This document shows, in pieces, positions 30,435-57,500 of a DNA stretch of 64,000 nucleotides. The stretch's first letter is position 1. Each line of letters opens with the position of its first letter. Source of the stretch: Paramoeba atlantica (Eukaryota > Protista > Discosea); the NCBI GenBank assembly GCA_977017575.1, contig CDRNVI010000100.1, positions 4,543 to 68,542 of the forward strand. Reading direction: 5' to 3'. A model generated the notes under the pieces. That model did not search any database and was not told the origin of the DNA. It saw nothing but the letters and a program-made list of their open reading frames with translations. The position numbers were made by a program, and so were the translations under genes.

Positions 30435-30845
30435 ACATTTTCTGGAGGGCACTGATACTCTTAACCTTTTATGTATGTCCGTTTCCGGCTGGCGCTAGGG
30501 CCGGATACTCTTCTTTCCGTTGAAGAGGGGCCGCCGCTCCGCACACCCGTGCAGCGCGTCAGACGCGCCGAATGCCCCCGCTGGATGGACGGCGAGGAGA
30601 GCCTCTCAACGACGCTGCGTAGCCGAAAGGCTTCTTGCAGCCTCTCAACGACGCCCCCCGCAGTGGAAGTCCAGTGCCCCCTTCACCCCCCCCCCCCCCC
30701 TCATGCGCTGCAGGACCTCCCTTGAGGACCACGCAGCGTGGCCATAGGCCGAATCCCTGCGTACGACCGGCGTTGAATGCGCTGTAATGGCCGTTGATAA
30801 CGGTCGTCGTACGTCAGGCGCTCACTCTGCAGGTCTTGCCCTGTA
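30435..30845. other. GC-rich structured element; diverged homologue of 52502-53057
   Basis: Shares ATG(T/C)CCGTTTCCGGCTG and ATGCGC..CCTCCCTTGAGGACCAC..GCGTG with the 52.5-kb element; several stems including GCC-GAAA-GGC. Confidence 0.55.
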
Positions 30846-30877
30846 TGAAATATACTGTTGAAATATACTGTTTATAC

Positions 30878-40174: not shown

Positions 40175-40206
40175 CAACAAGGTACAGAAACTGTATCTTT
40201 ATCGTT
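40175..40206 (-). other. Relic spliced-leader sequence at the head of a probable retrocopy
   Basis: Minus strand AACGATAAAGATACAGTTTCTGTACCTTGTTG followed by non-GT sequence; core matches the conserved kinetoplastid/diplonemid SL CAGTTTCTGTAC..TTG. Confidence 0.75.
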
Positions 40207-50556: not shown

Positions 50557-51014
50557 ATTCCTCCCTACAAGATACGGCACCCGCACATTTATAATGCATA
50601 TTAAGCTGCACATTGCTAATGCATCTAGCACATTTATAATGCATATTATTTTTATCATAGTGTTGTACACTAGAGATTTTCATTCCGGATAATCCTGGCA
50701 AAGATCAGGATCTTGTTCCGAAAGAGATTTTCCTACTCAAGCTGCTTGTGGTGGGTTCCAGGTGGGGTTCTGTCGCATAGTATATAGCCTAAATGAAGCC
50801 TGCAGTGCAGCAAGGGCAACGTTTTCACGCATTTTGCGAACGTGGTGCTTATAATCTTTTGGGAATCTCACCCCCGCTAAATAGGGGGGGAGGTGGTAGT
50901 TGTTTTGGGGGAAATGAGAGGCCGAACGCACGGAGGGGCCGGCCGGGCCACTGAGTGTGACGTTGGTGGGAAGCAATTTGCGAAGCCTCTAATGAAAAAA
51001 TATAATTAAATATG

Positions 51015-51312: not shown

Positions 51313-52320
51313 CTACTGCGAATCCTGTGAGCTATCCATCAGAATACGAGGACGAAGCATAGGAGGGGCGATAACCTTGATATTTTCGATCAATTCAATA
51401 GGCGAATTGTTCTCCAGGACATCTTTTGGTCGTTCGTTGATGGCTGCAGATGTCGTATCAAGCGCAGCTTGCGTGACGTGGGTGAACGATGTTCGCTTAC
51501 GGTAGAAATCACGAACAAGACCATTGAAATTTTCAACGCCCCCTTTCTCCCAACTTGCGTAGGGCTGACAAAAGAATGATTGACAGCCCACCGAAGCGTT
51601 CACTAGTTCGTGTTTCGCGAACTCGGTTCCATTGTCGTACGTGATAGTGAAAACTTGGAACCCCTGCAGAGCACGAGTGACCTCCTCGGCTACAACTTCT
51701 GATTTCTTGTTCTCCAACTTCCGGAGAACTCCGTAGCGGCTTTTTCTCTCCACTAAACTGAGAAAATAGCCACTATGTTGCGCGCCTTCAATCAAGTCAC
51801 ACTCCCGATCTCCATATCTGGAGCGAGTATTGACGAAACCTGGGCGCTCGCTTATGTCAGTTCGATTCGGTATTTTCAGGCGATTTGTACCCCGTCGCCT
51901 TCTACCGCGACCTCCCCCCCGGCGCAGGAACTGAACTAAATTCCCTGCTCTGTCTTCCTGTTTGATGAATCCATAAACGGCTACACGAGAAATCTTTACC
52001 CCATCTTCTTTAAAGAGAGTTGTAGCGATTTGCTGTGGGCTAAATCTCTTCCCCAGCAAAGCAATCACCTTCTCTTGCACATCACCTTGTATTTTCTGGT
52101 GCTTGTGTTTCCGCGAGGAAATGGATGTGTTTGCCGCTCGTTGCGCGCGCTTCGCATTATACTCCCCGTTACGCATACCTCTCGTGAGCTCGCGGCTCAG
52201 CGTTGACTGATTTACAGACAACTTTTCGGCTATTTCCTCCTGCGAGAAACCTTGCTGGTTGTATAGCACCTCTATTTTAGTGCGATCTTCATGATCCATA
52301 CGCTTTTTTGATTGTGCCAT
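51313..52320 (-). CDS. IS30-family transposase (copy 1), intact ORF
   Basis: HTH SQEEIAEKLSVNQSTLSRE; FSPQQI; IPNRTDISERP; ECDLIEG, TYDNGTEFAKH, PYASWEKGGVENFNG (D-33-E); likely start MAQ at 52320 after TTTTTCTCTCAG. Confidence 0.9.
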   Translation of the reverse strand: MAQSKKRMDHEDRTKIEVLYNQQGFSQEEIAEKLSVNQSTLSRELTRGMRNGEYNAKRAQRAANTSISSRKHKHQKIQGDVQEKVIALLGKRFSPQQIATTLFKEDGVKISRVAVYGFIKQEDRAGNLVQFLRRGGGRGRRRRGTNRLKIPNRTDISERPGFVNTRSRYGDRECDLIEGAQHSGYFLSLVERKSRYGVLRKLENKKSEVVAEEVTRALQGFQVFTITYDNGTEFAKHELVNASVGCQSFFCQPYASWEKGGVENFNGLVRDFYRKRTSFTHVTQAALDTTSAAINERPKDVLENNSPIELIENIKVIAPPMLRPRILMDSSQDSQ

Positions 52321-52355
52321 TGAAACAGAAAGCTGAGAGAAAAACGTAGAATTAT

Positions 52356-52464
52356 GCATGTGAATGTGCTATATGCATGTGAATGTGCTATATGCATCTG
52401 AATGTGCTATATGCATGTGAATGTGCTATATGCATCTGAATGTGCTGTTATGCATGTGAATGTG
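52356..52464. repeat. 19-bp array (GCATGTGAATGTGCTATAT)n, continuing at 53058-53175
   Basis: Tandem units; an uninterrupted relative lies at 57205-57350. Confidence 0.9.
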
Positions 52465-53057
52465 TTATATACAATAAAGATACAGTTTCTGTACCTTGTT
52501 GGTACATTTTGCTAGCCCTTCCTTTCTTTTCCCGGAAACGGGCATATTCTTACTTTTAAATGCCCGTTTCCGGCTGACGGCTAGCTGGAACTGTCCCTCT
52601 TTGTCGCGGAAGTAGGGGACGCACTTCGCACTCTTCACCCCTCCCCGGCTCGCTCTCTTCGAGTGAGCTTTCTTCTCCCGGGAGCTATGCGCCATGGTGG
52701 CCTCCCTTGAGGACCACTGGGCGTGCTACCGCGGGAGGACACGTTGTATGCGTGTATAGGGGATGCGAACTTGCACCCCTCTCTCCCTACATGCTGTAGC
52801 GAGTGCGGCGGTAACGGACCTCCCCATGATGCATCATGATCCACGATAGATCATCTGACAGCATGAACCCACGGCTTGACCGTGCTGCAGCATGAACCAT
52901 GGCTATACGTGCTGTAGCATGACCGATGGGCGTCTCGTCTCCTACCTCGCACTACACTCTCTGTGTGACACCCGTCGTATGCGGGTCATGCGCCGATGGT
53001 ATCGGCCGTCACACAGAGAGACGTATCTCTGCGCCACGAGCGTATGATCATGACCAT
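52465..53057 (+). mobile_element. Spliced-leader-headed structured retroposon (SINE-like) with a 17-bp TSD
   Basis: TTATGCATGTGAATGTG at 52448-64 and 53058-74, single at the empty site ~57289-57305; head ATAAAGATACAGTTTCTGTACCTTGTTG|GTAC; multiple stems; no coding potential recognised. Confidence 0.7.
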
Positions 53058-53179
53058 TTATGCATGTGAATGTGCCGCTTAGTATGCATTATCAATGTGC
53101 AGTAAATATGCATTTGAATGTGCTAATATGCATCTGAATGTGCTATATGCATTATAAATGTGCCGCTTAGTATGCATTA

Positions 53180-57031: not shown

Positions 57032-57384
57032 TAAATGTGCGGGAGGCGGGTCGCGCGAGCGACCCCTGATAAATGGGGGGAAGGTGGTAGTTGTTTTGGG
57101 GGAAATGAGAGGCCGAACGCACGGCCGGGCCGGCCGGGCCAATGAGCCAATAATATCTACACGTTTTTTGAAATTTGTGATTAAAAGGGAAGGATCAACA
57201 AAATTGAGAAATATGCATGTGAATGTGCTATATGCATGCGAATGTGCTATATGCATTTGAATGTGCTGTTGTGCATGTGAATGTGCTGTTATGCATGTGA
57301 ATGTGCCGCTTAGTATGCATTATCAATGTGCAGTAAATATGCATTTGTATGTGCTATACATGAGGGGCTGCGGGTGGGGATTCG

Positions 57385-57500
57385 GTACGGTCTCGGCGCG
57401 GTCTCGGCGCGGTCTCGGTGCGGTCTCGGTGCGGTCTCGGCGCGGTCTCGGTGCGGTCTCGGCGCGGTCTCGGTGCGGTCTCGGTGCGGTCTCGGTGCGG
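57385..57500. repeat. 11-bp array (GTCTCGG(C/T)GCG)n, ~10 units
   Basis: Directly visible. Confidence 0.9.

Follow-up and report, generated by a model that had tools for sequence, protein, structure and literature searches.

A spliced-leader-headed, SINE-like retroposon family, probably dependent on R2-like LINEs, in a genome with kinetoplastid-type trans-splicing

The locus lies in the window, by which we mean the whole 64-kb stretch of DNA that was analysed (contig C100 of the 45.7-Mb, 248-contig assembly in which genome searches were made), and consists of a 593-bp insert (52465-53057) in a minisatellite array. As the initial annotation had described, the filled site reads GCTG, a 17-mer, the insert, the 17-mer again and CCGCTTAG. 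The upstream 17-mer, TTATGCATGTGAATGTG (52448-52464), is a unit of a 19-bp ATGCAT minisatellite and not a demonstrated target-site duplication (TSD), and the downstream 17-mer (53058-53074) is the last full unit of the array; neither is assigned a strand. On the forward strand the insert begins with a 9-nt junction filler, TTATATACA (52465-52473), which is not spliced leader (SL) sequence and resembles the 5'-junction stutters of other copies; its final 3 nt (ACA) could correspond to SL nt 8-10 with one mismatch. All further parts lie on the same strand: the head ATAAAGATACAGTTTCTGTACCTTGTTG (52474-52501), the 14 nt GTACATTTTGCTAG (52502-52515), a 14-bp stem-loop (52532-52573, arms 52532-52545 and 52560-52573), a nearly invariant hairpin, GGTGGCCTCCCTTGAGGACCAC (52696-52717), a 3' domain (52957-53020) in which a 13-bp stem (arms 52957-52969 and 53008-53020) surrounds two small hairpins, the terminal signature ATCTC-(TGCGC CACGA GCGTA)-TGA (53025-53047) and a terminal tag, TCATGACC(AT) (53048-53057), which forms the 3' end of the element without poly(A). 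Both stems had been recognized by the initial annotation, as had the lack of an ORF or poly(A), which agrees with a longest ORF of 76 aa on the opposite strand and with the absence of poly(A). The insert contained no tRNA in a tRNA scan, no Rfam family at gathering and E-value thresholds, and no telomere-template motif.

Self-comparison of the window recovered the insert once, with weak matches at 30455-30740. The region 30435-30858 (+ strand), most of which had already been linked to the insert through shared helices, is a diverged, head-less superfamily member that has the conserved hairpin and a CTC-hairpin-TGA tail. The copy in the window carries a private 33-nt deletion between GCTTTCTTC repeats. 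A paralogous, uninterrupted array without assigned strand, TTGTGCATGTGAATGTG-CTG-TTATGCATGTGAATGTG (57269-57305), contains two adjacent units that match both flanks of the insert, and an 11-bp tandem repeat (GGTCTCGGCGC/GGTCTCGGTGC; 57380-57500) starts directly after this array. A second element end, ATCTC-TAGTG-TACAA-CACTA-TGATAAAAATAA, adjoins an ATGCAT array at 50650-50700 (- strand), on the other side of an IS30-like ORF (51313-52359, - strand); the IS30-like unit may have a LINE-type tail of its own, or one of the elements described below may have inserted beside it. Elsewhere in the window, an SL fragment at 40175-40205 (- strand), which begins at about nt 6 of the SL, runs into ATTTTTTTATCATG... 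and a short ORF; here a different RNA has left an SL-headed retrocopy.

SL trans-splicing in this genome is of the kinetoplastid type, and its SL/5S rRNA repeat units are bodonid-like; they form tandem arrays of 2.56-kb units on C97, C107, C11 and C24, and each unit combines a 5S rRNA gene (99 bits) with a gene for SL RNA. The SL exon is AACTTTAACGATAAAGATACAGTTTCTGTACCTTGTTG, continued in the true SL RNA genes by GTATGAGAAGCTTCGAAC...; sequence past the exon reads GTATGAGAAGC and the intron GTATGAGAAGCTTCG.... The head of the insert equals SL exon nt 11-38 and is identical to the exons of the true SL RNA genes, which confirms the proposed SL-like head and its relation to the real SL, since it is a genuine piece of that exon. 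Past the head the insert reads GTACATTTTGCTAGCCC..., which has only GTA in common with the SL intron, and comparison of GTACATTTTG with that intron gave no match. The GTACC/GGTAC hairpin that had been likened to the stem at SL RNA splice donors is real and occurs in all subfamilies, but beyond GTA it is unrelated to the SL intron. Because the intron differs, the element is not derived from SL RNA itself. It also lacks the features of an SL RNA pseudogene: a full exon (nt 1-10 are missing), the SL intron and the upstream promoter. The exact SL string gave no match in the literature. No source gene with an AG acceptor before GTACATTTTGCTAGCC was found in the genome; every genomic GGTACATTTTGCTAGCC is preceded by the T of the SL and never by an AG acceptor, and the head was therefore inherited with the element. 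A 5'-truncated SINE-like copy is fixed behind (CT)n in every SL unit (L081 at C97:1-6000, and C107, C11 and C24); this copy within the 2.56-kb unit was considered as a source gene and rejected, as it is truncated within the first stem.

Genome-wide searches with the body and head, as the initial annotation had suggested, revealed a dispersed multi-copy family. The insert yielded 56 matches from 40 scored of 441 first-look candidates, on different contigs and with unrelated flanks. The A-type 3' tail, the type carried by the window copy, occurs 48 times in the genome at ≤1 mismatch, and 25 distinct A copies have a mean pairwise identity of 99.0% (indels ignored); the related tails of subfamilies B, C and E account for 152 occurrences. 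Bodies of subfamilies A-D are only 72-82% identical, and each of the four has the exact SL head, with 5' and 3' domains that are conserved on either side of a variable centre; head, 5' domain and 3' domain are common to A-E. The 5' starts vary, with a mode at SL nt 10-15 and a range from nt 3 to beyond the head, including starts at SL nt 6-27 and at element positions 41-180, and the 3' ends are constant despite this variable 5' truncation. The 5' junctions are often stuttered (ATAAAGATAAAG or repeated partial heads), with direct tandems of the LINE-to-SINE and the SINE-to-SINE type in L008, L016 and L084. We infer that template jumping, with joining by microhomology in the SL's single A-rich stretch, accounts for stutters and tandems. 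In L084, copies that start at element position 175-180 were considered as a LINE 3'UTR, and this was rejected as an LRR fragment lies between the LINE and the copy. A 5.2-kb tandem unit (L073-L074, C65:1-16000) carries only a B-type 3' tail, followed by TTTCTGTACCTTGTT; these units showed neither the head nor reverse transcriptase (RT) homology.

The insert RNA was predicted to fold at -253.7 kcal/mol compared to -191.8 ± 7.5 for shuffled sequences (z = -8.25). Pairing was counted by script in 13 representatives, with slid-partner controls. The 14-bp stem, the GGUGGCCUCCCUUGAGGACCAC hairpin and the 3' domain were 96-100% paired in these representatives, whereas the slid controls were paired at about 20-60%. 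The 13-bp 3' stem showed compensatory changes at 6 of 10 scored pairs between subfamilies, and the other helices showed one or two; the 14-bp stem-loop, present in all subfamilies, has a single compensatory change of an A-U to a C-G pair. The nearly invariant hairpin is common to subfamilies A-D and the diverged copy (30716). In 12 of 12 head-bearing copies, a GGAACUGU box that is conserved in the body is predicted to pair with SL nt 19-26, a pairing that shows no covariation because the SL does not vary. The terminal hairpin, whose layout is that of LINE tails, covaries across the SINE-like subfamilies (TGCGC/GCGTA, TGCGC/GCGCA, TGCAC/GTGCA and others).

In all subfamilies the 3' end consists of ATCTC followed by a hairpin of 5 bp, TGA and a short tag, without poly(A), and the initial annotation had proposed comparing this 3' end with those of resident LINEs. 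One such LINE, here LINE-X, encodes an RT for which R2 proteins are the best matches among solved structures (PDB 8gh6, E = 4e-25), and its C-terminus aligns weakly to R2 residues 1046-1119, in the region of the restriction-like PD-(D/E)xK endonuclease (E = 0.03). LINE-X copies are 97-100% identical; near-identical copies at at least seven loci (L083 and L085-L095 on C20, C87, C71, C45, C54, C44 and C30; 99-100% identity over 669 nt) indicate very recent activity. The 5' end of LINE-X is an SL fragment starting at nt 8, 9, 11, 14 or 19 in five copies (nt 11 in L083), followed by an unrelated T-rich 5'UTR and a start codon; copies differ at the SL/5'UTR junction through slippage of TTG or CTTGTTG. 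Its 3'UTR consists of a long stem and then ATTCTC-TGCCTT-ATA-AAGGTA-TGATAAATTAAA (tail ...CTC-TGCCTT-ATA-AAGGTA-TGATAAA). A related LINE in L008 ends in TGATATCATC and directly adjoins an A copy. The tails of LINE-X and the L008 LINE have the layout of the element: a long stem, ATCTC, a covarying hairpin, TGA and a short tag. A LINE with the identical main A tail (…GCGCC ACGA GCGTATGA TCATAACC) was not found in the genome. An A sub-lineage with diagnostic substitutions ends in TGATATCAT..., not TGATCATAACC, and the TGATATCAT tag is also that of the L008 LINE. Beyond head and tail, the element body has no homology to a LINE. Shared architecture, head and target, together with one matching tag, make a partnership between element and LINEs likely. 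In L083, subfamily B was considered as part of the LINE-X 3'UTR; this was rejected as 11 other LINE-X copies stop aligning at the junction, and subfamily B at this locus is a separate insertion or a chimera.

LRR genes house most copies, which are sense-oriented and sit at LPxxLxxL|xLxxNxFxG. An LRR motif at the right distance was present on at least one flank in 20 of 32 distinct insertions, compared to 11.6% of random positions, and a downstream LRR motif was present in 41% of insertions compared to 1% of random positions; the control positions were drawn from the 64-kb window only. The flanks of LINE-X are also mostly LRR, in the same codon phase and in sense orientation, without target duplication. 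Units of the ATGCAT array resemble the LRR target (TTATGCATGTGAAT compared to CTTGCATAATAAC, and TTATGCAT..AAT compared to CTTGCATAATAAC), a resemblance that may explain the off-target insertion in the window.

The initial annotation had interpreted the flanking 17-mers as a 17-bp TSD, on the ground that the homologous empty array holds the 17-mer once. The 17-mer is one unit of the 19-bp minisatellite; allowing ≤2 mismatches, it matches the window 14 times where 0.02 matches were expected, and the empty array contains a copy with 1 mismatch (57269-57285) located 3 bp upstream of the exact one (57289-57305). The flanking 17-mers can be two pre-existing units because the paralog already has two adjacent units; the paralog comparison is not decisive against a real 17-bp duplication by itself, because the arrays differ in unit number anyway. 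When 30 nt upstream were compared with 45 nt downstream of each distinct copy, the longest flank match averaged 5.3 nt across 31 copies, compared to 4.9 nt for mismatched pairs, and only the window copy had a flank repeat above chance (17 nt), with none in the other 30. In nine LRR insertions the distance from the Pro to the Asn codon across the element stayed within -3 to +1 of the intact 33 nt. Integration thus appears near-blunt, as in R2, and the "17-bp TSD" is probably two neighbouring minisatellite units. On the simplest reading, insertion occurred between two existing units with the loss of ~3 bp, and the pre-insertion site would have read ...GAATGTG-CTG-TTATGCATG.... A real 17-bp TSD made through staggered nicks by L1/ingi-type TPRT, with an APE-type LINE mobilising the element at least here, is in our view unlikely. 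It draws on the exact 17/17 flanking repeat, on CCGCTTAG also following the last unit of the paralog, and on the poly(A) retrocopies of this genome, which imply a second, poly(A)-dependent machinery. It is opposed by the 0 of 30 other distinct copies with a repeat above chance, the register held by the nine LRR insertions, the two adjacent near-identical units of the paralog exactly here, and an element without poly(A). The LINE-mediated TPRT with TSDs of 7-20 bp put forward by the initial annotation is replaced by machinery that is likely R2-like and not of the L1 type with staggered nicks.

The history of the head was examined in variants and in SL copies genome-wide. Some copies join the SL directly to CCCTTCC and have lost exactly GTACATTTTGCTAG, which ends in AG and is not SL intron. 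These 14-nt-less variants occur on at least three substitution haplotypes, each also seen in unspliced copies, which suggests that transcripts of the element have repeatedly been trans-spliced, the acceptor being the first AG past the U-rich relic; recombination, whether among copies or among templates, could also have spread the variants across haplotypes. The 3' 20-mer of the SL has 877 dispersed copies genome-wide on both strands, compared to 0 for the control. Many are arranged as A(n), full SL, short 5'UTR and ATG (e.g. L031-L060, contigs C1 and C2), some of them in tandem 5093-bp units on C1, a pattern that, as in dinoflagellates, suggests retroposition of trans-spliced mRNAs on a large scale. 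The poly(A) retrocopies keep the SL from nt 1-3. Tandem junctions of a full SL with a relic SL number 25 genome-wide (e.g. C14:509725 and C27:63916); most are located at the AG within the SL itself, nt 21-22 (CCTTGTTG|TTTCTGTACC), and two at nt 15-16. The window copy has no tandem relic SL. We take the tandem relics as evidence for repeated rounds of presumed retroposition and re-trans-splicing. At L063 (C6:27088, - strand) a complete SL RNA (exon and intron) precedes an A-run and, beyond it, a 22-bp tandem repeat, and looks like a retrocopy of unspliced SL RNA.

Together, we consider it highly probable that the insert belongs, as a single copy, to a young retroposon family that is non-autonomous and LINE-dependent (SINE-like). 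The initial annotation had offered an SL-RNA-derived SINE-like family, of which the SINE-like, multi-copy nature and the SL-exon head stand and the derivation from SL RNA does not, as the intron differs. It had alternatively offered a retrocopy of an unknown structured ncRNA, which is contradicted by the lack of a source with an AG acceptor, the several diverged subfamilies and the LINE-like tail. The broader form of that idea, in which the copies are pseudogenes of a host-functional, trans-spliced, structured ncRNA and not a selfish element, would account for the strong conserved RNA structure with covariation and for an SL head implying a Pol II-made, trans-spliced precursor, and trans-spliced ncRNAs such as telomerase RNA are known in kinetoplastids. 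We regard it as very improbable: GGTACATTTTGCTAGCC always follows the T of the SL and never an AG acceptor, at least four subfamilies were each amplified separately, the 3' module is laid out like LINE tails, there is neither an Rfam match nor a telomere-template motif, and the copy in every SL/5S unit is 5'-truncated behind (CT)n and so is not a source gene. Still less credence attaches to an SL RNA gene fragment or pseudogene, or to a SINE headed by the whole SL RNA (exon and intron). The exact match to the SL exon over 28 nt with GT behind it, the GTACC/GGTAC hairpin that mimics a splice-donor stem and an AUUUUG Sm-like motif downstream invite such a reading, but the true genes continue with GTATGAGAAGCTTCGAAC..., unrelated beyond GTA, the SL promoter is absent upstream and exon nt 1-10 are missing, and the same head stands on protein-coding LINE copies before an unrelated 5'UTR. 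DNA-level rearrangement or unit gain of the IS30-flanking array, without a mobile element, would fit an insert that lies in a repeat array beside a DNA-transposon-like gene; the same 0.6-kb sequence at dozens of unrelated loci with different flanks leaves it next to no probability.

For the preferred retroposon reading, the following route is proposed from the sequences. Sense copies in polycistronic Pol II units would be transcribed through, and a LINE reverse transcriptase would recognise the 3' hairpin module and prime on the nicked target. The 5' junction would then form at irregular positions within the A/T-rich portion of the SL head, the stutters and the head-to-tail LINE-to-SINE tandems suggesting template jumping. 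The SL head would stem from genuine trans-splicing and be renewable, re-splicing at the first AG after the U-rich relic removing GTACATTTTGCTAG. The window copy would be an off-target insertion between two ATGCAT minisatellite units.

Several known systems share parts of this arrangement. In trypanosomatids, the short non-coding NARTc and RIME elements share a conserved 5' hallmark, Pr77, and the 3' end with the LINEs L1Tc and ingi, on which they depend (PMC5814959, PMC1874656, PMC8190864). The element described here likewise shares a 5' hallmark with a LINE of the same genome. The LINEs of NARTc/RIME are APE-type, with poly(A) and TSDs, and Pr77 is not SL sequence; here, in contrast, SL exon nt ~8-38 serves as the hallmark, a restriction-like endonuclease is carried by the R2-like LINEs, poly(A) and TSD are lacking, and the body is not an internal deletion of a LINE. 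Recognition of a structured 3' end, not poly(A), is the rule for the non-autonomous partners of R2 (SIDEs) and for stringent SINE/LINE pairs such as UnaSINE1/UnaL2 of eel, which share a 3' stem-loop, and R2-type integration has imprecise 5' junctions and makes little or no target duplication. Unlike in these systems, the target here is an LRR codon phase, not rDNA, and the 5' end is a host SL, not a ribozyme or a Pol III small-RNA head. Nor is the element a classical SINE with a tRNA, 7SL or 5S Pol III head and an internal promoter, since its head is the SL exon.

The CRE clade (CRE1/2, SLACS, CZAR) comprises kinetoplastid restriction-like-endonuclease LINEs that insert between SL exon nt 11 and 12 (PMC5814959, PMC12278014). 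In the present genome, heads start most frequently at SL nt 10-15, but the SL is carried on the element and is not its target, and insertions are in LRR genes. A CRE-like origin by present-day insertion into SL genes was rejected, as none of the 34 promoter-bearing SL genes found is interrupted at nt 11-16; given these intact genes, the proximity of the SL nt 10-15 starts to the CRE site is striking and is for now left as coincidence. Dinoflagellate DinoSL retrogenes have a DNA-encoded 5' SL and tandem relic SLs from rounds of trans-splicing and retroposition (PMC5585692, PMC6050394, PMC12014239). An SL head in DNA and 25 tandem relic junctions are found here too, in another phylum and with another SL, and the tag heads transposable elements as well as mRNAs. 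The literature searched held no report of DNA-encoded SL tagging of this kind in Euglenozoa. SINEU elements also have heads from spliceosomal-class small RNA (PMC4494074), with whole U1/U2 genes acting as promoters; here the head is the SL exon only, and autonomous LINEs carry it too.

More tentatively, the SL fragment might be a required 5' module for a guild of R2-like LINEs and SINE-like parasites, a reading to which we give less than even credence. The fragment stays exact while bodies diverge to about 75% identity and is paired with the GGAACUGU box; it would be renewed by host trans-splicing, which would supply a proper RNA 5' end, and integration would have evolved at one LRR codon phase. 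If this were true, the expanded LRR family would be a protein-coding 'safe haven' used instead of rDNA or SL genes.

For annotation, a match to the SL in this genome should not be taken for an SL RNA gene, nor a repeat that flanks an insert inside a minisatellite for a TSD. An R2-like set with a covarying 3' hairpin as candidate recognition structure and a codon-phase target would be useful for understanding how R2 chooses its RNA and DNA, and for gene insertion. Mobile elements in this kinetoplastid-type genome routinely carry the host SL in their DNA. Such elements appear to be direct evidence of cyclic reverse transcription and re-splicing of trans-spliced RNAs, including LINE and SINE-like RNAs, a cycling of SL tags that in the literature searched is described for dinoflagellates only.
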